In this document: one piece after another, positions 1 to 63,593 of the stretch
How positions within the stretch are numbered: position 1 is the stretch's first letter
How the letters are laid out: every line of letters begins with the position of its first letter
IMG/VR virus record: IMGVR_UViG_3300050120_000152
Location: 1-64,000 of that record
Strand: one strand, 5' to 3'
DNA: 64,000 bases
The notes under the pieces: model-generated
Database searches by the model: none
Told to the model about the DNA's origin: nothing
Seen by the model: the letters and a program-made list of their open reading frames with translations, nothing else
Position numbers and translations under genes: made by a program

Positions 1-265
<265 letters not shown>

Positions 266-55361: not shown

Positions 55362-55699
55362 AAAAATTGACTCAAATTCTCTCCGAACAAAAAGAACAAA
55401 AAGAAAAAGAAAAGAAGTTGAGATTTGTTGAAACCAATCCTCAAGAAGCATTTCCCAATGATACAATTTCTTATTTACAAAAAGAAATTAATAAATTAGC
55501 CAAAGATTTAAGTGTAGATTGGAAGAGTCCAATTGAATTAGTCAATGCCGCTTTTTATAATCTTGAAGTTCCTATTCCTAAAGCATTCTTGGCAAAACGC
55601 TGGCAACAATATAACACATTATTTGGTGTAGCCATCAAAAGTTTGTTTGATGCTCGCGGATTTGGTGCAGATTGGTCAAATTCTTCCGCTCACAAATAA
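55358..55699 (+). CDS. Hypothetical protein (KKLTQILSE N-terminus)
   Basis: ATGA overlap. Confidence 0.65.
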   Translation: MKKLTQILSEQKEQKEKEKKLRFVETNPQEAFPNDTISYLQKEINKLAKDLSVDWKSPIELVNAAFYNLEVPIPKAFLAKRWQQYNTLFGVAIKSLFDARGFGADWSNSSAHK

Positions 55700-55722
55700 A
55701 TATAATAAATGGATACAGAATC

Positions 55723-56580
55723 ATGGATTTAAATAGATTAAGAGTATTAGCAGGATTAGACCCAATTGCTGAAAGTATTGAGCTTAATGAAGCGGAAAAC
55801 ATTAAAAAGGGTGCTTTCCATAAATGGTTAGGCAAGCCTGAAGATGAAGCTATTACAGATGCTGATGTTGATCGCGGCTTAAAGTCTGATGATGAACATG
55901 TCAGAAAAATGGCACAATTCGCCAAGAATATGAGAGAATCAGTAAACGAAGTCGAAGAACCTAAAGTACATGAATTATCATTTAAGTGTCCAGAATGCTC
56001 ACATGCATGGTCAATACATGCAAAAGTTGAACGCGACGACGAATGCCCTAAATGTGGTAAAGTATCACTACCTAAAAAGAATGTAAATGAAGTGTCAGCC
56101 GCAAAGCTTGCACATAGAACTCATGGAGATAATCCTGCTTCTGAAGCGGCACACGATTCGGATATCCCAAAAGTAACATTTATGGAAAAGCCACCAGCCA
56201 ATGCATTAATTTTAACTCAGGTTGAATTTGATGATGACACATTGAATTTCAATAAAACTAAAATGGGTGTCGATGTTGAGGAAGAAACCAAGGTCAAAGT
56301 TCCTTCAGATGTTATGAAACATATTAATAAGAGAATTCAAGAGCTTAAAGCTTCTATTGAAACTTATGATGAAAAGGGTTACGATGATAAGAGTGTCAAG
56401 AGTAGAGCTATTGAATGCTTAGAAAAAATTAAAAAACATTTGGAAGCGGGTACTCAAGAACAATATAAGCAGGCTCAAGTATACTATGGTACATTAATGA
56501 GTCCTATATTCGATATGTTCCCTACACAATTAATTAATTTTCTACACTCAACCAGCGCTCACACAAAATCTAAAATTTAA
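55723..56580 (+). CDS. Candidate internal head protein with Zn ribbon
   Basis: MDLNRLRVLAGL..IAESIELNE; CPEC...CPKC. Confidence 0.6.
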   Translation: MDLNRLRVLAGLDPIAESIELNEAENIKKGAFHKWLGKPEDEAITDADVDRGLKSDDEHVRKMAQFAKNMRESVNEVEEPKVHELSFKCPECSHAWSIHAKVERDDECPKCGKVSLPKKNVNEVSAAKLAHRTHGDNPASEAAHDSDIPKVTFMEKPPANALILTQVEFDDDTLNFNKTKMGVDVEEETKVKVPSDVMKHINKRIQELKASIETYDEKGYDDKSVKSRAIECLEKIKKHLEAGTQEQYKQAQVYYGTLMSPIFDMFPTQLINFLHSTSAHTKSKI

Positions 56581-57278
56581 TGAGTGTTCAATTAGCCACC
56601 ATGAAGCAATTACTTGCTTCAATGCAAACTTGTGCCGATGACAAGAAAGTCCTTACGCAAGCGTTAGGACTTTCCAGTTTAGTATATTTTTCAAATGATT
56701 TTATAGCAGCCCAATTAACTGCAATAGGCATGACCTACAAAATTTTTGAACAGGCTGACATGAAGTGCGTTGTAGCCGAAACTTCTGATACTATTTTTAT
56801 ATCATTTCGGGGTACTGTTCCGTCACAATGGGCAAATTGGAAAAGAATAGTTAATATTATTCCAAGATCATTTATGTATAATCTTAAAGTACATGGCGGG
56901 TTTGAGTTATATTATCAAGAATATGCCGCATTTGTTAAATCTTATATTGATACCATCACAACTCATAAATGTGTTATATTTACCGGCCATTCATTGGGTG
57001 CTGCAATAGCATCATTATTTAATATTAGTTATACTAAAAATTCCACTTCTATTACATTTGCTTCACCAGAATATTTATTCAATCATCCGTTTGAATCAAC
57101 GAGTTCAACATCTTATAGAATAATGCAAGATTTTGTAACTTACATCCCATTTAACTTACCTTTATTAAAATGGTATAAATCATCAACCACTATAAAAGTT
57201 AAATCCTTTTATAGATCGGTTAACCCATTATCCTATCACAGCCTCAATAATTATATCAAGTCGATTTTAATCACTTGA
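56580..57278 (+). CDS. Class-3 lipase (alpha/beta hydrolase)
   Basis: ISFRGT, KVHGGF, TGHSLGAA (GxSxG), ITFASP, DFVTYIP, HSLNNY. Confidence 0.85.
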   Translation: MSVQLATMKQLLASMQTCADDKKVLTQALGLSSLVYFSNDFIAAQLTAIGMTYKIFEQADMKCVVAETSDTIFISFRGTVPSQWANWKRIVNIIPRSFMYNLKVHGGFELYYQEYAAFVKSYIDTITTHKCVIFTGHSLGAAIASLFNISYTKNSTSITFASPEYLFNHPFESTSSTSYRIMQDFVTYIPFNLPLLKWYKSSTTIKVKSFYRSVNPLSYHSLNNYIKSILIT

Positions 57279-57303
57279 TAATCATTCTCATTTGATATAT
57301 ACT
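57275..57303 (+). promoter_or_regulatory. sigma70 promoter overlapped by a Fur box (57276-57290)
   Basis: TTGATA-N17-TATACT; TGATAAT-C-ATTCTCA has one mismatch to the 7-1-7 Fur consensus. Confidence 0.75.
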
Positions 57304-57321
57304 TAATAAAATAGGTATTTT

Positions 57322-57522
57322 ATGATAATATGTTTATGTAATGGTGTTACCGATAGAGATATTTTATGTGCTATTGATAGAGGTTTGGATACAGTTGATG
57401 CCTTATCAGATGAACTCAACGTGACGACCATCTGTGGATCATGTCAACATGAAATCGAAAGTTTAATACAGAAATTTGTTAAACCATCTAATCATTATTT
57501 AAAATTTGTTAAGATTGATTAA
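57322..57522 (+). CDS. bfd: Bacterioferritin-associated [2Fe-2S] ferredoxin
   Basis: MIICLCNGVTD..I...I..G......L.......CGSC. Confidence 0.9.
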   Translation: MIICLCNGVTDRDILCAIDRGLDTVDALSDELNVTTICGSCQHEIESLIQKFVKPSNHYLKFVKID

Positions 57523-57568: not shown

Positions 57569-58267
57569 ATGAATTTTAAATTAATGGCAGAGCATAACCA
57601 ACGTATGCTTAAGACGTATACTCGCGATAAAGGTTATGTCAATCTTCGCGTAGCACAATTAGATTCAAATGGGAAAATATTGAATGTGTTTAAGAATCGG
57701 TATTCTGCATCACGTTATGTTATTGAAACTAAAATGTCTAATTATTTGAGTCCGAAAGGATTAGGGTTTACTCGCGCAGCCATTGCCGGAACTCTTACGA
57801 ATTGTATGATGAATACTGCATATGCCTATGGATATTATTGGAAGATTCTCTCGCCATACGATTCAAGTTTGGTCGTGACTAAAAAATATAAAAACGATTC
57901 AACTTATAAAAACAATAAAATATCCGATACTAAACGCTGGATCGTGATAGATAAAACTAAAGAAATAGAATTTAACTCATTAAAATCTATTTCTAAAACA
58001 TACAATATTGGTATTCGTACAGTCACACGTATGGCTAAAACTAACGAAACAATAAATGCTCTATCACTTATCAAGAAAAATATATTTCCTACAGAGAAGA
58101 CTTTTGATAGTTTTAGCCATATGCAACGATTCTTTAGAATTAGTAGAGAGACTGCCAAAAAAATTATTGATAATAAATTAATAATCCGTACATATATCCC
58201 AATTATACCTTCCGATAAATTAATAAAAAATTATGAAAAAACTAACTGCTTAAGGAAATTAGCATGA
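57569..58267 (+). CDS. NUMOD1-like DNA-binding repeat protein (homing-endonuclease remnant or regulator; start uncertain)
   Basis: VAQLDSNGKILNVF.N..SASR..AYGYYWK; further F.S...I repeats; no nuclease motif seen. Confidence 0.55.
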   Translation: MNFKLMAEHNQRMLKTYTRDKGYVNLRVAQLDSNGKILNVFKNRYSASRYVIETKMSNYLSPKGLGFTRAAIAGTLTNCMMNTAYAYGYYWKILSPYDSSLVVTKKYKNDSTYKNNKISDTKRWIVIDKTKEIEFNSLKSISKTYNIGIRTVTRMAKTNETINALSLIKKNIFPTEKTFDSFSHMQRFFRISRETAKKIIDNKLIIRTYIPIIPSDKLIKNYEKTNCLRKLA

Positions 58268-58794
58268 CACCAAATCTGTCCCAACACGGCATTACCGTAA
58301 AAAATGGTTTTGGATTTTTTTGGGGTGGTGTGCTATCTAATTGGTACAAATGTAACTTCATTGCTGAATCTGTTAAATATACATCTACCGAGCAGCATAT
58401 GATGTATAATAAAGCAGTATTGTTTAATGATCTACACATTGCTGGAAAGATATTAAAAACATCCAATACCAAAGAAATTAAAGCATTAGGTCGTAAAGTT
58501 AGAAATTTTGATCAGAAAGTTTGGGATCAGATGCATACCTTTATTGTCCTAGAAGGTAATTACGAGAAATTCATTCAAAATGAAAACCTTGCAGATATTT
58601 TGGTTGCTACCGAAGGGCTTGAATTAGTTGAGGCATCTCCATATGATAAAATTTGGGGTGTAGGTCTAGCAGTCGATCATCCAGATATCATTCATAAAGA
58701 TAAATGGCGTGGTACTAACCTATTAGGTAAAGTTTTAACTGATGTTAGAGCAGAAATAATTACTACAAGATCATTTAATGGATTGACAAGATGA
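58264..58794 (+). CDS. NADAR (YbiA/DUF1768) family protein
   Basis: FFWGG.LSNWY, TEQ.MM..KA.LF.D, KALGRKV.NFD, EASPYDKIWG.G, G.NLLG. Confidence 0.93.
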   Translation: MTPNLSQHGITVKNGFGFFWGGVLSNWYKCNFIAESVKYTSTEQHMMYNKAVLFNDLHIAGKILKTSNTKEIKALGRKVRNFDQKVWDQMHTFIVLEGNYEKFIQNENLADILVATEGLELVEASPYDKIWGVGLAVDHPDIIHKDKWRGTNLLGKVLTDVRAEIITTRSFNGLTR

Positions 58795-59000
58795 AAACCT
58801 TTGATGAAGCATGGGATGAATTAGGTTATGATTTTGGCAATGATGCATTAGAAAATGTAAAACTTGGCTGGGAATTATGTATTAAGTCTTTACCTAAAGT
58901 GCATACAATTAATTTAGAAGGGCTAAGTCGAAAAGAACAATATAAAATTATAGAATCTGTAAGAAACGGTACATACATAATGCCCAACTTGGGTGAATAA
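58791..59000 (+). CDS. Hypothetical protein
   Basis: ATGA overlap. Confidence 0.55.
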   Translation: MKTFDEAWDELGYDFGNDALENVKLGWELCIKSLPKVHTINLEGLSRKEQYKIIESVRNGTYIMPNLGE

Positions 59001-59002
59001 TC

Positions 59003-59521
59003 ATGATAATTACATTAGATTCAATAAAATTAGATAATAATTTTATACCATCTGAAACATATGATGGCAGAGTTCTATTGTTTCTTGATTTTGATGGTGT
59101 TCTTCATGCTTATGAACAAGGATATAAGCGAGATAAAGACAAAATTTTTATTCGTAACCATTTCATCGAAGATATTCTTCGAAAAATGCCTAATGTAGAA
59201 GTGGTAATATCCTCCAACTGGTCAAAGACATGTTCGTTAAATATCCTGAAAAATAAATTTTCAGAAGACGTGAGGCATCGCTTTATTGGTCATTTACGTA
59301 AACATACCACAAGTCGCTCCGATGATGTGCGAACCTATATGGAAACTCATGGTGAAGTAGATGTGCCATGGGTTGCTGTAGATGATCTAGCATATTTCCA
59401 TGATACCGATCCAGTAATTCGTACATCGTATAAGACAGGACTGATGGAAGACTCTTGTAAAGCCCTTGAAAATGCGTTATCATCACCTATTGAATATAAA
59501 AAATATAAAGAAACTATATGA
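59003..59521 (+). CDS. HAD-family phosphatase (RNA-repair 'Swiss army knife' type)
   Basis: LFLDFDGVL, VVISSNW, WVAVDD. Confidence 0.8.
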   Translation: MIITLDSIKLDNNFIPSETYDGRVLLFLDFDGVLHAYEQGYKRDKDKIFIRNHFIEDILRKMPNVEVVISSNWSKTCSLNILKNKFSEDVRHRFIGHLRKHTTSRSDDVRTYMETHGEVDVPWVAVDDLAYFHDTDPVIRTSYKTGLMEDSCKALENALSSPIEYKKYKETI

Positions 59522-59790
59522 AAACTCAAGGTAGATGTACAATAGGTGACATATTAAACACCATTGAAGGACTCAAAAAATGTGGATACACTGAGGAACA
59601 AATCAACGAACTTCCTGTTTATATCCAACGTATTGAAGATAGTTATTTTGAATCTGGTGGTTGGCGTACTAATGTCCGTCAATGGGGAGTTTATCAAGAA
59701 GATACTTCCGAATACATTGCAGCCTTTACCTCATTAATCAATAAAGATGAAAATGGTAATTTAGAATTTTGTATTGATGCACATTATTGA
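59518..59790 (+). CDS. Hypothetical protein
   Basis: ATGA overlap. Confidence 0.55.
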   Translation: MKTQGRCTIGDILNTIEGLKKCGYTEEQINELPVYIQRIEDSYFESGGWRTNVRQWGVYQEDTSEYIAAFTSLINKDENGNLEFCIDAHY

Positions 59791-59814
59791 TTTAAAAATA
59801 GCAGGAATATATTA

Positions 59815-60084
59815 ATGTTAAGAGACTGCCCAGAACCAACTGAATATGTATCGAAAACCTATCCAATTTTTGACTGGAAATTTTGTCAGAACTGTCACAA
59901 ACAATTTCGTCGTGAATGGGGCTGGAAATATGTAAAGCGCACATTACCAAAAATTGTAATATACAATTATATTTGTAATAAATGTGGAGAAGATGATAAA
60001 CTATATGTTGGTAAAATGGCATATAGATTTATGACCCGAAAACCTCCCAGACCAAGCCCGCCATCAGCACCACCTAAATATTAA
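59815..60084 (+). CDS. Small Zn-ribbon protein
   Basis: CQNC...CNKC. Confidence 0.55.
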   Translation: MLRDCPEPTEYVSKTYPIFDWKFCQNCHKQFRREWGWKYVKRTLPKIVIYNYICNKCGEDDKLYVGKMAYRFMTRKPPRPSPPSAPPKY

Positions 60085-60095
60085 ATGTTCAAGTA

Positions 60096-60124
60096 TTGAC
60101 TTTGAACATAAATAGTCATACAAT
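60096..60124 (+). promoter_or_regulatory. sigma70 promoter with nested late-type CATAAATA
   Basis: TTGACT-N17-TACAAT; CATAAATA 60107-60114. Confidence 0.65.
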
Positions 60125-60184
60125 GTACAAACTATATACGAATTACATGGGAGTCATGGATTAGTACCTAACCGGAGCTAACAC

Positions 60185-60760
60185 ATGATTAACCAAATAA
60201 TAAAAATTTCTAGTATAGATTATAAAGAATGTCGTTCAAAAATTCATCAGCATAAAACTAGATTAGTTCCATTAAATTTAATGGGTAAACTCAAGAGAAG
60301 TAAAGATGGATATTCAAATAAATGTAAAAAATGTGCGATAATTGAGCAACGTACATCAGACTCTAGAGGAAATAGACAACGATATAAAGAGAAAAGACGC
60401 TACAGAGAAGGCATGGATAAAACCCTCTGGCGTGGTTGTAAAGATAATGCAAAAATAAGAGGTATCGAATTTAATCTTGATCCTGAAGATATAGTTGTAC
60501 CGGATATATGTCCAATATTCAATATACCACTTATTAAAGATGTAAATTATTTAAAATATAATGGTCGTAAAAATCCAATGGGGGTGGATGAATATCCATC
60601 TATTGATAGATTAGACTCCACAAAAGGTTATATTAAAAATAATATAAATATAATTAGCTGGAAGGCAAATAACTTAAAAAGTAATGCTACTCTAGATGAT
60701 TTAGAAAAACTCTTGAAATGGGTCAAGAGTAAATATGAAACACAACACTTAGAAAGGTAA
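60185..60760 (+). mobile_element. HNH-type (endonuclease VII-like) homing endonuclease gene
   Basis: CPIF..PSIDRLDSTKGYIKNN..IISWKANNLKSN. Confidence 0.8.
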
Positions 60761-60765
60761 GTATT

Positions 60766-61887
60766 ATGAATAACAAAACAGAACGATTTCCCTATATTTG
60801 GAGCTTGTTTATCCTAAGAGGTCAAGGTTTTCACCTTGGTCACCTTCATAACATAAATGAAGCATTAAAAATTTCCAAATTTCTTATTATCTTACTCGGA
60901 AGCCATAACAAAGCAATTGACTTTGATGATCCGTGGACGGTTGAACAACGCCGTGAAATGATCGAAGCTTCTTTAACAGAAGACCAAAAAACCCGTATTT
61001 ATTTTCAATACATTGAAGACCGACTTTATTCTAATAGTACATGGATTGCCATGGCTCAAGAAAAAGTTGATTCTATTTTACTTCAATATAGCCGATATCG
61101 TTTAAATGCTATTGATAAAAACAAGCAGGTCAAAATGTGCATTATCGGCCATTCCAAGGATGAATCAAGTTGGTATCTTAAAGCATTTCCACATTTGGAT
61201 TTGGTTGAATTACCAAAATTCAATATTTTTGAATCAGATGGCCCCATAAATGCTACAGACATTCGTCATTACATTTACGAAAATAAATTTGGACATGCTA
61301 AAGCATTAATGCCCTCTGGAACCTATAATTGGATTATTAAAAACTGGATCAACACACCAGATGCCAAATATGTTAAAGATTGGTATGATTTTGAAATGAA
61401 ATACGAAGAACCATATTTAACTCAACCATATGCCGTAAATTTTTATACAGCAGATGCTGTAGTTATTCACAGTGGTCATGTTTTATTAGGACGCCGTAAA
61501 AATTTTCCGGGCAAAGATTATTGGGCAATTATTGGTGGGCATGTTAATGCTAATGAAACAGCACAAGAAGCTTCTGTTCGTGAATTATATGAAGAAACTA
61601 AAATTAGAATTTCTCCATTAGAATTGCAAAAGTGTCTTAAATTTGAAAAACTTTTTGACCATCCAAAGCGTTCAAAACGATGCTGTATGAGAACAAAAAA
61701 AGGTAGAACCATTTCTATGACCTATTGCTATGTTCTAGATAATGAGCTACAATTGCCTTATATTGAAGCTGATGATGATATCGCTGAAGTCAAATGGGTT
61801 CCATTCTCAGATATTAAAAATATGCGAAATGTTCTATTTGAAGATCATGCAGATATTTTGGATTATTGTATCAACCATATTAATTAA
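60766..61887 (+). CDS. nadM: Bifunctional NMN adenylyltransferase / ADP-ribose pyrophosphatase (NadM-Nudix)
   Basis: R.Q.FHLGH, GSHN, INATDIR, Nudix box GGHVNANETAQEASVRELYEET, FEDH. Confidence 0.92.
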   Translation: MNNKTERFPYIWSLFILRGQGFHLGHLHNINEALKISKFLIILLGSHNKAIDFDDPWTVEQRREMIEASLTEDQKTRIYFQYIEDRLYSNSTWIAMAQEKVDSILLQYSRYRLNAIDKNKQVKMCIIGHSKDESSWYLKAFPHLDLVELPKFNIFESDGPINATDIRHYIYENKFGHAKALMPSGTYNWIIKNWINTPDAKYVKDWYDFEMKYEEPYLTQPYAVNFYTADAVVIHSGHVLLGRRKNFPGKDYWAIIGGHVNANETAQEASVRELYEETKIRISPLELQKCLKFEKLFDHPKRSKRCCMRTKKGRTISMTYCYVLDNELQLPYIEADDDIAEVKWVPFSDIKNMRNVLFEDHADILDYCINHIN

Positions 61888-61901
61888 TATAAATTGGGAA
61901 A

Positions 61902-62096
61902 TTGAAGATGACAATGTGGAATTTAAAAAATTTAATAGATTATGTAAATCATGGTGGAGTATCATCCAGTAATGATGGCAAAACTTGGGTACCATGTAGA
62001 CCAGAAAGTGGTACATTTCTCTTCGAAAAGACAAAGGCTGCTTGGGAAGTGTTCCGAGGTCGTGCTGATGCTGTTCGATGGCCGCAAGGGCAATAA
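61902..62096 (+). CDS. Hypothetical protein
   Basis: 64-aa ORF 'WVPCRP..KAAWEVFRGRADAVRWP'. Confidence 0.55.
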   Translation: MKMTMWNLKNLIDYVNHGGVSSSNDGKTWVPCRPESGTFLFEKTKAAWEVFRGRADAVRWPQGQ

Positions 62097-62168
62097 TAAA
62101 GCAGTAAACAACATTGATGTAAGACGGGTTACATAAAACAAATTAATTGTCTAATAGGAGACATAACA

Positions 62169-63593
62169 ATGAACAGTACATTTAAAACAGAATATTTGAA
62201 CAACCTTACCGAGAATATGATTCTCGACGCAGATTCTTACAAGGCAAGCCATTTCGCTTTTCTTGAAGATGGTACTACAGACATTCGTCTATATATCGAG
62301 GCCCGCACTGGTGCAAAGCATCAAGCTGTGGTAATGGCTGGTATCCAAGCCTTCAACAAAAAGTACATGATGAAGCCAATCACTCAATTTATGATTGATC
62401 AGGCTGATTGGTTTCTTACCACTCATGGTGAGCCGTTTAATCGTGCTGGATGGGAATACGTGCTGAATTATCATGCTGGATATATGCCGGTCGTTATTAA
62501 AAGCGCCGAAGAAGGCACCACTATCCCTATTGGTTGCCCGTACATCACCGTAGAGAACACTGACAAGCATCCTTTGGCTGCATGGTGCAGTTCGTACATT
62601 GAAACGAAGATCATGCGTACATGGGCACCCATTGCTGTTGCAACACAGTCGAATCTTGTTCGCAAGCTTATCTTGGAATATCTTGAAAAGACTGGTACAC
62701 CAGAATTGATTGATTATAAGATGGTTGATTTTGGTAGCCGTGGTGTTAGCTCTAAGGAAACTGCCGAAATTCTTGGTGCTGCTCATCTTACTAGTTTTCG
62801 TTCTACAGATAATTTGATGGGCATTGCCCATGCAATGACATATTACAATGCTACTGAAATGTTGGGTGAATCTATCCCTGCCAGCGAGCATTCGGTGACC
62901 TGTGCACGCGGCAAGGAAGGTGAACTTCAGTTCTATCTTGACATTGTTGATCGTTTCCTTGGTGAAGGTAAGATGGTATCGGTTGTTGGTGATACTTATG
63001 ACCTTGATGTTATGCTTGATATGCTAGGAACTATGGTTAAGCCATATTTGCTTGCAAAGGGTGGCACATGGGTAGTTCGTCCAGATAGTGGTGATCCTGT
63101 TCTTCAGGTCATGCAAACTATTCGCAAGTTGGAATTATATTTTGGTACAACTACCAATGATAAGGGCTATAAGGTTCTTCATCCTTCTGTTAGAATCATT
63201 CAAGGAGATGGTGTAGATGCTGCGTCGATCCATCGTATCTTGGTGGCTCTTGAGACGGCACATTATAGTGCGGACAATATCACATTTGGTTCGGGTGGTT
63301 GGTTGCTACAGTCGTTGAATCGTGACACCAATCGTACTGCCATGAAAGCATCGTATGTTGAAGTGGGTGATCGTAAGCTTGAAATCCGTAAGGAAGTCAA
63401 AACTGACCCAAGCAAGGCTTCGAAAGCTGGACGTGTTACTACTGTACTTCGCAACGGTAAGAAAATCTGTGTCAAGGAAGATGATATGATTGAAGGCGAT
63501 ATTGATCTTCTTAATGAAACCTATCGTGATGGTGAAGTCTTGAATTTGATTGACTTTGCGACAGTACGAGAGAACGTAAAAGCTGGGAAGTGA
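62169..63593 (+). CDS. nadV: Nicotinamide phosphoribosyltransferase (NAMPT)
   Basis: DSYKASH, DFGSRG, AAHL.SF.STD, IPASEHS, SVVGDTYD, VVRPDSGDP, IIQGDG, FGSGG, KASK.G. Confidence 0.95.
   Translation: MNSTFKTEYLNNLTENMILDADSYKASHFAFLEDGTTDIRLYIEARTGAKHQAVVMAGIQAFNKKYMMKPITQFMIDQADWFLTTHGEPFNRAGWEYVLNYHAGYMPVVIKSAEEGTTIPIGCPYITVENTDKHPLAAWCSSYIETKIMRTWAPIAVATQSNLVRKLILEYLEKTGTPELIDYKMVDFGSRGVSSKETAEILGAAHLTSFRSTDNLMGIAHAMTYYNATEMLGESIPASEHSVTCARGKEGELQFYLDIVDRFLGEGKMVSVVGDTYDLDVMLDMLGTMVKPYLLAKGGTWVVRPDSGDPVLQVMQTIRKLELYFGTTTNDKGYKVLHPSVRIIQGDGVDAASIHRILVALETAHYSADNITFGSGGWLLQSLNRDTNRTAMKASYVEVGDRKLEIRKEVKTDPSKASKAGRVTTVLRNGKKICVKEDDMIEGDIDLLNETYRDGEVLNLIDFATVRENVKAGK

Follow-up and report, generated by a model that had tools for sequence, protein, structure and literature searches.

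The stretch of DNA analysed here (henceforth the window) comprises the first 64 kb of a phage genome that was assembled from a peat metagenome as one contig of 340,344 bp with 34.7% G+C (IMG/VR record IMGVR_UViG_3300050120_000152). The phage context was established from structural genes in the window, i.e., those encoding the major head protein, tail sheath, head-tail adaptor, and terminase. Among named phages, the closest are the jumbo phages XacN1, Xoo-sp13, RAS14, and CM1 (~45% identity for the adaptor protein). The same phage was present, without variants, in three peat DNA sequencing runs; a look for RNA runs gave none. The analysis concerns the gene bfd, which encodes a small Bfd-type [2Fe-2S] ferredoxin, and the promoter directly upstream of it, which carries an inverted repeat resembling the binding site of the iron repressor Fur. 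The original prediction, which had been made from the nucleotide sequence, placed this box on the -35 element of a TTGATA-N17-TATACT promoter directly ahead of a [2Fe-2S] Bfd gene; coordinates and sequence of the box proved exact, and the open reading frame (ORF) behind the promoter matched the Pfam family PF04324 (Fer2_BFD). The features of promoter and gene are as follows, with G003 and G004 denoting two uncultured relatives of the phage:

57275-57280, + strand: -35 hexamer TTGATA (TTGATA also in G003, TTGACA in G004)
57276-57290: Fur-type 7-1-7 inverted repeat TGATAATCATTCTCA, candidate operator (one mismatch to the consensus; rank 1 with a matrix of bacterial bfd boxes)
57275-57294, + strand: 20-nt core TTGATAATCATTCTCATTTG (exact match to bacterial iron-regulated promoters)
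57298-57303, + strand: -10 hexamer TATACT, 17 nt past the -35 (identical in G003 and G004)
57313-57315, + strand: putative weak Shine-Dalgarno-like AGG, 6 nt ahead of the ATG, from reading of the sequence
57322-57522, + strand: bfd, stand-alone 66-aa BFD-like [2Fe-2S] ferredoxin (PF04324)

In a promoter scan, the two hexamers were recovered as a sigma-70-type promoter with matches at 10 of 12 hexamer positions, a 17-nt spacer, and 18 nt between the -10 hexamer and the ATG; transcription would probably start near position 57310. The box TGATAATCATTCTCA spans positions 2-6 of the -35 hexamer as well as the first 10 nt of the spacer and lies 46 nt from the start of the bfd ORF, and its first three bases are at the same time the TGA stop codon (57276-57278) of the upstream lipase gene. 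Agreement with the Fur consensus TGATAATnATTATCA extends over 13 of the 14 specified positions, and the sole deviation, A to C (ATTCTCA), is the commonest variant among bacterial bfd boxes. Through TTGATA instead of TTGACA, the promoter has a perfect Fur half-site and a weaker -35 element. The consensus of the Fur box, the mechanism of promoter occlusion, and the role of Bfd in the mobilisation of iron from bacterioferritin are summarised in PMC7762939.

Rarity of the box and its bacterial counterparts

Matches to the consensus with at most one mismatch were expected 0.13 times per 64-kb window, and of 100 shuffled versions of the window, 12 contained at least one. The bare consensus match is weak evidence and not significant, and the case rests on context. 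Across the whole genome, four sites were found at this threshold, of which the other three are located inside ORFs. Sites were additionally scored with a symmetrised 19-nt matrix derived from 31 non-redundant boxes upstream of bacterial bfd genes. With this matrix, which represents bacterial bfd boxes and may not be the preference of the host, the phage site ranked first among 340,326 genome positions (20.8 bits; per-position P = 4.4e-8 for the box at 57276-57290), and under the base composition of the genome, sites at this level are expected 0.015 times per genome and 4e-6 times per 100-nt upstream window. The second-best site in the genome (16.4 bits) falls within a coding sequence, and all remaining intergenic sites scored 11 bits or less. 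That no comparable box accompanies other promoters, as had originally been noticed for the window, was borne out genome-wide, with none present among ~80 sigma-70-type promoters. These ~80 promoters are strong matches to TTGACA-N16-18-TATAAT (many at 12 of 12 positions; fourfold enriched in intergenic DNA), and judging from them the phage clearly appears to use host-type (sigma-70-type) promoters. An apparent second intergenic box at genome positions 123169-123192, consisting of two overlapping 7-1-7 matches (TGATAATGGTGATCATAATTATCA), was rejected, as it lies inside a small ORF starting near position 123083; its bfd-box matrix score is low, and the double Fur-like match is probably due to chance.

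Bacterial bfd loci were collected by scanning metagenomes with an alignment of phage Bfd sequences, i.e., they were selected by protein similarity and not by promoter; about 80 loci, mostly bacterial bfd, were obtained, and no additional close phage ortholog. Most of the sampled bacterial loci carry TGA[C/T/G]AAT-n-ATT[C/A][T/G]CA 25-65 nt upstream of the start codon, and their -35 hexamer, usually TTGACA, overlaps this box in the same register as in the phage (e.g., TTGACAATCATTCTCATTTGCATATACT in a bacterial bfd promoter and TTGATAATCATTCTCATTTGATATATACT in the phage). The 20-mer TTGAYAATCATTCTCATTTG was scanned in one genome per prokaryotic species, resulting in at least 120 loci, with about 2 expected by chance according to our own estimate. 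Among the matches listed, which stem overwhelmingly from Gammaproteobacteria (Xanthomonadales/Lysobacterales, Steroidobacter, Woeseiaceae, Pseudohongiella, Kangiella, Legionella), the TTGACA form sits 35-79 nt ahead of a Bfd-type ORF in 71 of 77 cases and is followed by a same-strand bacterioferritin homolog in 57 of the 77, mostly 340-620 nt downstream, while the exact TTGATA form precedes bfd in none of 45. Ten ORFs downstream of the TTGATA form, again among the matches listed, were scanned, and eight of these are metal-uptake genes, namely three TonB-dependent receptors, hemP, three FbpA-type solute-binding proteins, and the Nramp gene mntH in an Escherichia genome; the remaining two, including one for a Legionella membrane protein, had no Pfam match. 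Judged by the genes that it precedes, the 20-mer typifies promoters under iron regulation.

A close counterpart of the 20-nt core of the phage is the promoter of mntH, which matches it at 19 of 20 positions in typical E. coli and at all 20 in one Escherichia genome. The E. coli Fur site clusters listed in PMC2189734 include mntH (-56) as well as bfd (-40), and Patzer and Hantke 2001 is cited there for the repression of mntH by Fur and MntR. Since the mntH promoter of typical E. coli differs at one of the 20 positions, the phage site is at least as near to the consensus as an accepted Fur-regulated promoter of E. coli. Gammaproteobacterial Fur-repressed bfd(-bfr) promoters resemble the phage promoter in the 20-nt core (the same apart from the Y position), in the 7-1-7 box over the -35, in the small [2Fe-2S] gene behind it, and in the distance to the start codon (35-79 nt, compared with 46 nt in the phage). 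Unlike in bacteria, bfd of the phage is followed not by bfr but by genes for NAD (nicotinamide adenine dinucleotide) and ADP-ribose metabolism, and its -35 is TTGATA instead of TTGACA. The mntH promoter likewise has a near-identical core directly upstream of the gene, but the regulated gene is a different one and the phage lacks an MntR box. The database record 'Acinetobacter phage MD-2021a' (CAKLQH020000003.1) was found at this locus to be a bacterial chromosome contig with the genes spoT, yabJ, bfd, and bfr, and the promoter of that bfd contains a canonical Fur box.

These comparisons, i.e., the best matrix match of the genome, the identity of the 20-nt core with bacterial promoters, and the single-position difference from mntH, strongly support the proposal that the phage bfd promoter carries an operator for host Fur. 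It is accordingly regarded as probable that host Fur represses an iron-mobilising phage gene via an operator on a host-type bfd promoter, and we infer from the likeness to bacterial promoters that the box would bind Fur and that expression would respond to iron. The region 57275-57303 would act as a sigma-70-type promoter for the host RNA polymerase, with the Fur operator over the -35 and the spacer, in what appears to be the same design as that of the bacteria's own bfd gene. In an iron-replete host, Fe2+-Fur dimers would occupy the 7-1-7 repeat and block the polymerase. In an iron-starved host, metal-free Fur would leave the DNA and allow transcription of the phage bfd, which would probably extend into the closely spaced genes downstream.

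The Bfd-like protein and the proposed use of stored iron

The bfd product matched PF04324 with an E-value of 3.2e-13 (50.2 bits, cut-off 26) and aligned without gaps over residues 1-50 with Bfd of P. aeruginosa (6E6R/4E6K), with Cys4, Cys6, Cys38, and Cys41 kept (C-x-C ... C-x2-C). These four cluster cysteines are invariant across six phage homologs, and according to the similarity scan and a quick tree, the homologs of bfd are bacterial. A complex of the phage Bfd with an E. coli bacterioferritin (Bfr) dimer, heme, and the 2Fe-2S cluster was modelled alongside three controls, using a tool with a mark that 51 of 78 solved complexes and 2 of 108 mismatched pairs had attained. The ipSAE was 0.88, compared with 0.00 for the best control, for a pair of which a like complex has already been solved, so that memory is possible. 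At least 97% of contacts were common to the model runs (partner pLDDT 84). The ferredoxin was positioned in the groove of the Bfr dimer above the heme, with modelled contacts of Bfd residues 1-2, 5-6, 8, 10, and 37-44 and of Bfr residues 68-81, 85, and 89, which we take to be the surface of the solved BfrB-Bfd complex.

A bfr gene adjacent to bfd is absent, the phage genome being devoid of any ferritin-family gene; family searches of the genome found no ferritin/Bfr-family, no FUR-family, and no radical-SAM gene. As the phage has no bacterioferritin gene of its own, the Bfd-type product would most likely dock on host bacterioferritin and pass electrons to its heme. Stored Fe2+ would thereby be released for phage enzymes, e.g., the phage's own class I ribonucleotide reductase (NrdB, 219025-219906; NrdA, 220132-221784 of the genome). 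The lack of ferritin/Bfr and Fur genes, the presence of NrdAB, the kept cysteines, and the complex model are all compatible with such a benefit, in which released iron would supply enzymes of the phage.

Related phages and alternative explanations

The bfd gene is a gene of the clade, as it was recovered in XacN1, Xoo-sp13, and RAS14 by hidden Markov model searches and in CM1 by tblastn; it is unannotated in RAS14, and the XacN1 paper makes no mention of it. Closer, uncultured relatives with bfd are G003 (350 kb, 42.5% G+C) and G004 (a 175-kb fragment), which were the only two close orthologs obtained in IMG/VR scans with alignments. IMG/VR scans with single neighbouring proteins returned relatives without a nearby bfd, a DNA-level search for close relatives returned short NADAR matches only, and in a word-based protein search the query itself was the sole match. 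G003 and G004 have a local gene order in common (113-aa gene, 302-aa gene, lipase, bfd, then NADAR and/or HAD). The quick Bfd tree of 148 short sequences was poorly resolved and shows neither a single origin of phage bfd nor a recent transfer. The closest Bfd from outside the clade (49% identity; sister to the phage clade in the quick tree) is encoded on metagenome contig Ga0065715_10102040, and the TTGACA promoter and hairpin upstream of it suggest that this contig is probably another phage of the group without a Fur box.

In G003, whose proteins have a median identity of 56% with those of this phage, TTGATA, the 17-nt spacer, and TATACT are retained together with the box TGATAGTCACTCTCA. Both changes in this box fall on the mirror positions 6 and 10, thus preserving the dyad, and each is also found singly in bacterial bfd boxes. 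By matrix, the G003 box ranks first in its 350-kb genome (16.1 bits, next 13.7 bits) and is weaker than that of this phage; a plain consensus count gave no Fur-box enrichment in the G003 genome. Its retention shows that a predicted, Fur-like box predates the split from G003, and the symmetry of the changes hints at a constraint on the putative operator. The box, for which conservation upstream of bfd in related phages had been put forward as a check, was accordingly found in one of the two close orthologs (G003) and is missing as a good box from G004 and from all three distant ones, so that absence upstream of orthologs, which had been named as refuting the idea, applies in part. A long inverted repeat was also observed in G003 (locus sequence L015, 2447-2500; -24.2 kcal/mol, z -5.2); it takes in the right half of the box and the -10 and reaches into the leader. 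This repeat is absent from this phage and from G004, and its formation would be limited to DNA or to transcripts that read through from upstream.

XacN1, Xoo-sp13, RAS14, and CM1 share with this phage a stand-alone Bfd-type gene with its own sigma-70-type promoter near NAD salvage genes, and unlike this phage, they have no good Fur box but a hairpin and U-run between the promoter and the ATG. In RAS14, Xoo-sp13, and XacN1, a TTGACA promoter is followed by a conserved hairpin with an 8-bp stem (AAGCCCTG...CAGGGCTT) and then by a U-run that adjoins the ATG, without a Shine-Dalgarno sequence (locus sequences L011, 1440-1500; L010, L012 (reverse strand), ~1440-1500). The RAS14 leader folds at -19.4 kcal/mol (z -4.75), and the hairpin and U-run of this group could be an attenuator or a 5' stabiliser. 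An Rfam search of the leaders returned no known RNA family, and the leader of this phage gave no significant fold. Dyads are also present in the promoter spacers of XacN1 (TAAGAAC-A-ATTCTTA) and RAS14 (CAAGAAT-C-ACTCTTG), both weak by matrix. In these two phages bfd follows a homolog of the window gene at 55672-56580; no such match was made for the upstream gene of Xoo-sp13. The motif AATCACT-TGATAA, common to this phage and RAS14, was tried as a phage-specific promoter motif and rejected, as it is the end of the lipase gene here and did not recur at other promoters.

Several observations weigh against Fur control of an iron-mobilising gene in this phage, and they are given here with the explanations that bear on them. 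Regarding the protein, Tyr2, presumably a contact residue in P. aeruginosa Bfd, is replaced by Ile, and the product scored 22.8 bits against the NCBIfam Bfd equivalog (NF007803), for which the cut-off is 75 bits. With this score and no matching family in a PHROG search, the protein is named Bfd-like and not a proven equivalog. The complex model shows likeness and not binding, given that a like complex has been solved, and it may be a memory of the BfrB-Bfd complex. It is conceivable, albeit rather improbable, that the regulation is as proposed and that the protein has a different job, being a general [2Fe-2S] electron carrier (e.g., one that reduces the di-iron site of NrdB or serves the NAD/ADP-ribose enzymes) and not a bacterioferritin partner. 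Such a role would be in line with the Ile at position 2, the score below the equivalog cut-off, the occurrence of the domain in NirB-type proteins, the phage-encoded NrdAB, and the NADAR, HAD, NMNAT-Nudix, and NAMPT genes that neighbour bfd in all relatives. A stand-alone, Bfd-sized protein with a gap-free alignment and four cysteines, a confident model on the Bfr dimer groove above the heme, and a promoter of the type that marks bfd-bfr loci in bacteria all argue for the bacterioferritin partner instead.

Regarding the promoter in relatives, G004 has the promoter, with a consensus TTGACA beside a retained TGATAGT half-site, but not the box (-3 bits), and the box is weak or absent in XacN1 (10.1 bits), RAS14 (6.7 bits), and Xoo-sp13 (0.5 bits); Fur control is therefore not general to phage bfd. 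Spacer conservation between this phage and G003 was compared with that of 14 other orthologous promoter pairs (range 1/17 to 15/18), and the identity at bfd (13/17) was matched or exceeded by 3 of the 14. Spacer conservation, considered as a proof of selection, was downgraded after this control, so that selection on the box is suggested and is unproven by conservation alone. In addition, no terminator was found between the lipase gene and bfd, such that read-through could bypass the bfd promoter. A passenger relic, in which bfd was captured with its native bacterial promoter and the box may bind Fur but is decaying and not maintained for the phage, is considered unlikely, somewhat more so than a different job of the protein. 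The phage promoter is indeed almost identical to bacterial bfd promoters, G004 and the XacN1 group lost the box and retain bfd with a sigma-70 promoter, and the conservation of the G003 spacer is within the range of other promoters. However, the phage box is nearer to the consensus than most bacterial bfd boxes (left half TGATAAT), it was retained in two lineages at 56% protein identity whose leaders have completely diverged, and the changes in G003 are mirror-symmetric; nor is the Bfd tree able to show a recent transfer.

The preference of the host's Fur had to be assumed, since the phage is a contig from a peat metagenome. The dyad might then be the operator of another regulator, either a host Fur-family protein (Zur, Mur, PerR-like) or a dimeric repressor encoded by the phage, for which the different dyads in the same spacer of XacN1 and RAS14 and the symmetric change of both G003 half-sites away from the Fur consensus could also be adduced. 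This is very unlikely in view of the TGA...TCA ends and the full 20-mer, which match iron-uptake and bfd promoters and not zinc or peroxide regulons, and no FUR-family gene was found in the phage genome; a phage repressor would moreover predict a regulon, contrary to which the genome has no second copy of the dyad. Least credible of all is a chance AT-rich palindrome in an ordinary promoter without Fur binding, as in a genome of 35% G+C, with a match at no more than one mismatch in 12 of 100 window shuffles and three further such sites inside ORFs, the site nevertheless ranks first by matrix at 0.015 expected per genome, precedes the one gene where a Fur box was expected a priori, and is identical at 20 of 20 positions to bacterial iron-gene promoters.

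Gene neighbourhood, host, and wider setting

The genes around bfd in the window are the following:

56580-57278, + strand: class 3 lipase/esterase upstream of bfd (PF01764, E-value 4.5e-11; phrog_21992 esterase/lipase; same neighbour in G003 and G004)
57569-58267, + strand: ORF with a weak NUMOD1 match, between bfd and NADAR, possibly co-transcribed
58264-60084, + strand: tightly packed downstream genes (NADAR, small ORF, HAD_SAK_2, two small ORFs)
58264-58794, + strand: NADAR (Pfam)
59003-59521, + strand: HAD_SAK_2 (Pfam)
60766-61887: bifunctional NMNAT-Nudix
62169-63593: NAMPT

The NUMOD1-like ORF occupies this position in this phage only (in G003, bfd is followed by NADAR, and in G004 by HAD) and is therefore probably a mobile insertion with a homing-endonuclease-type look. 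A terminator scan found no + strand terminator-like site from bfd to the next strong promoter-like site at 60096-60124, and in G004 the stop codon of bfd overlaps the start of HAD. Given the lack of a terminator before 60096 and the overlapping or abutting genes, co-regulation of NADAR and HAD is plausible, and the downstream genes including NADAR may plausibly be under control of the bfd promoter, as originally suggested. The genes at 58264-63593 constitute an NAD/ADP-ribose cluster beside bfd, and related genes flank bfd in G003, G004, and RAS14. NMNAT-Nudix and NAMPT are possibly an NAD+ salvage pair. Phages are said to use such pairs against NAD-depleting defences.

At genome positions 182700-192600, many small genes are preceded by consensus promoters that are almost the same as one another (TTGACA-N16/17-TATAAT, with ACTCCCATCATC-like leaders behind them), and this promoter family looks like an array of early-gene promoters. 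A run of 25 consecutive bases (TTGATAATCATTCTCATTTGATATA) is common to the phage promoter and to promoters before a large membrane-protein gene in Legionella or related metagenome-assembled genomes (L109, L112, L138). This identity may point to a low-G+C gammaproteobacterial host and is treated as only a lead. At both ends of the contig, a (TAA)n microsatellite was found (window 1-129; genome 340215-340344), with 130 nt identical between the ends; as both ends are simple repeat, the 'direct terminal repeats' of the record and its label of 100% completeness rest on a simple repeat.

Control of phage genes by nutrient sensors of the host is known from cyanophages, where it concerns phosphate, and from prophages, where it concerns toxins. 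In work attributed to Zeng and Chisholm from 2012, the cyanophage genes pstS and phoA are reportedly under the host PhoB regulator. They resemble the proposed bfd control in being host-derived metabolic genes under a host nutrient-stress regulator that are expressed only on starvation, and they differ from it in concerning phosphate and not iron, an activator and not the repressor Fur, and uptake and not an internal store; control of bfd is, in addition, a prediction from sequence. On temperate phages, stx1 is repressed by Fur and tox by DtxR, which likewise places a phage-borne gene under a host iron repressor with the operator in the promoter. These two are prophage toxins that benefit the lysogen, whereas an iron-metabolism gene on a jumbo phage is concerned here. 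The literature that was searched contained no description of a phage-encoded bfd or of a large phage with a Fur-gated gene for metabolism or for the mobilisation of stored iron. With homologs in bacteria and a predicted site for the host regulator in its promoter, bfd has the features of an auxiliary metabolic gene under a host nutrient regulator.

A joint reading of these elements can be offered tentatively, and is itself somewhat doubtful. A virulent jumbo phage would use a Bfd 'key' only under starvation reported by Fur, and would raid host bacterioferritin in order to metallate ribonucleotide reductase or other iron enzymes. Hundreds of replicated near-consensus boxes could in turn titrate Fur and so help to derepress iron uptake of the host, and in the sister lineages a leader hairpin would have taken the place of the Fur gate, i.e., the regulation would have been re-tuned host by host. 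The cultured phages XacN1 and RAS14, which carry bfd without the box, provide a natural comparison, and a near-identical Fur site has already been characterised in E. coli. If the proposed control by host Fur is true, phages would take charge of iron within the cells that they infect, and would do so conditionally.

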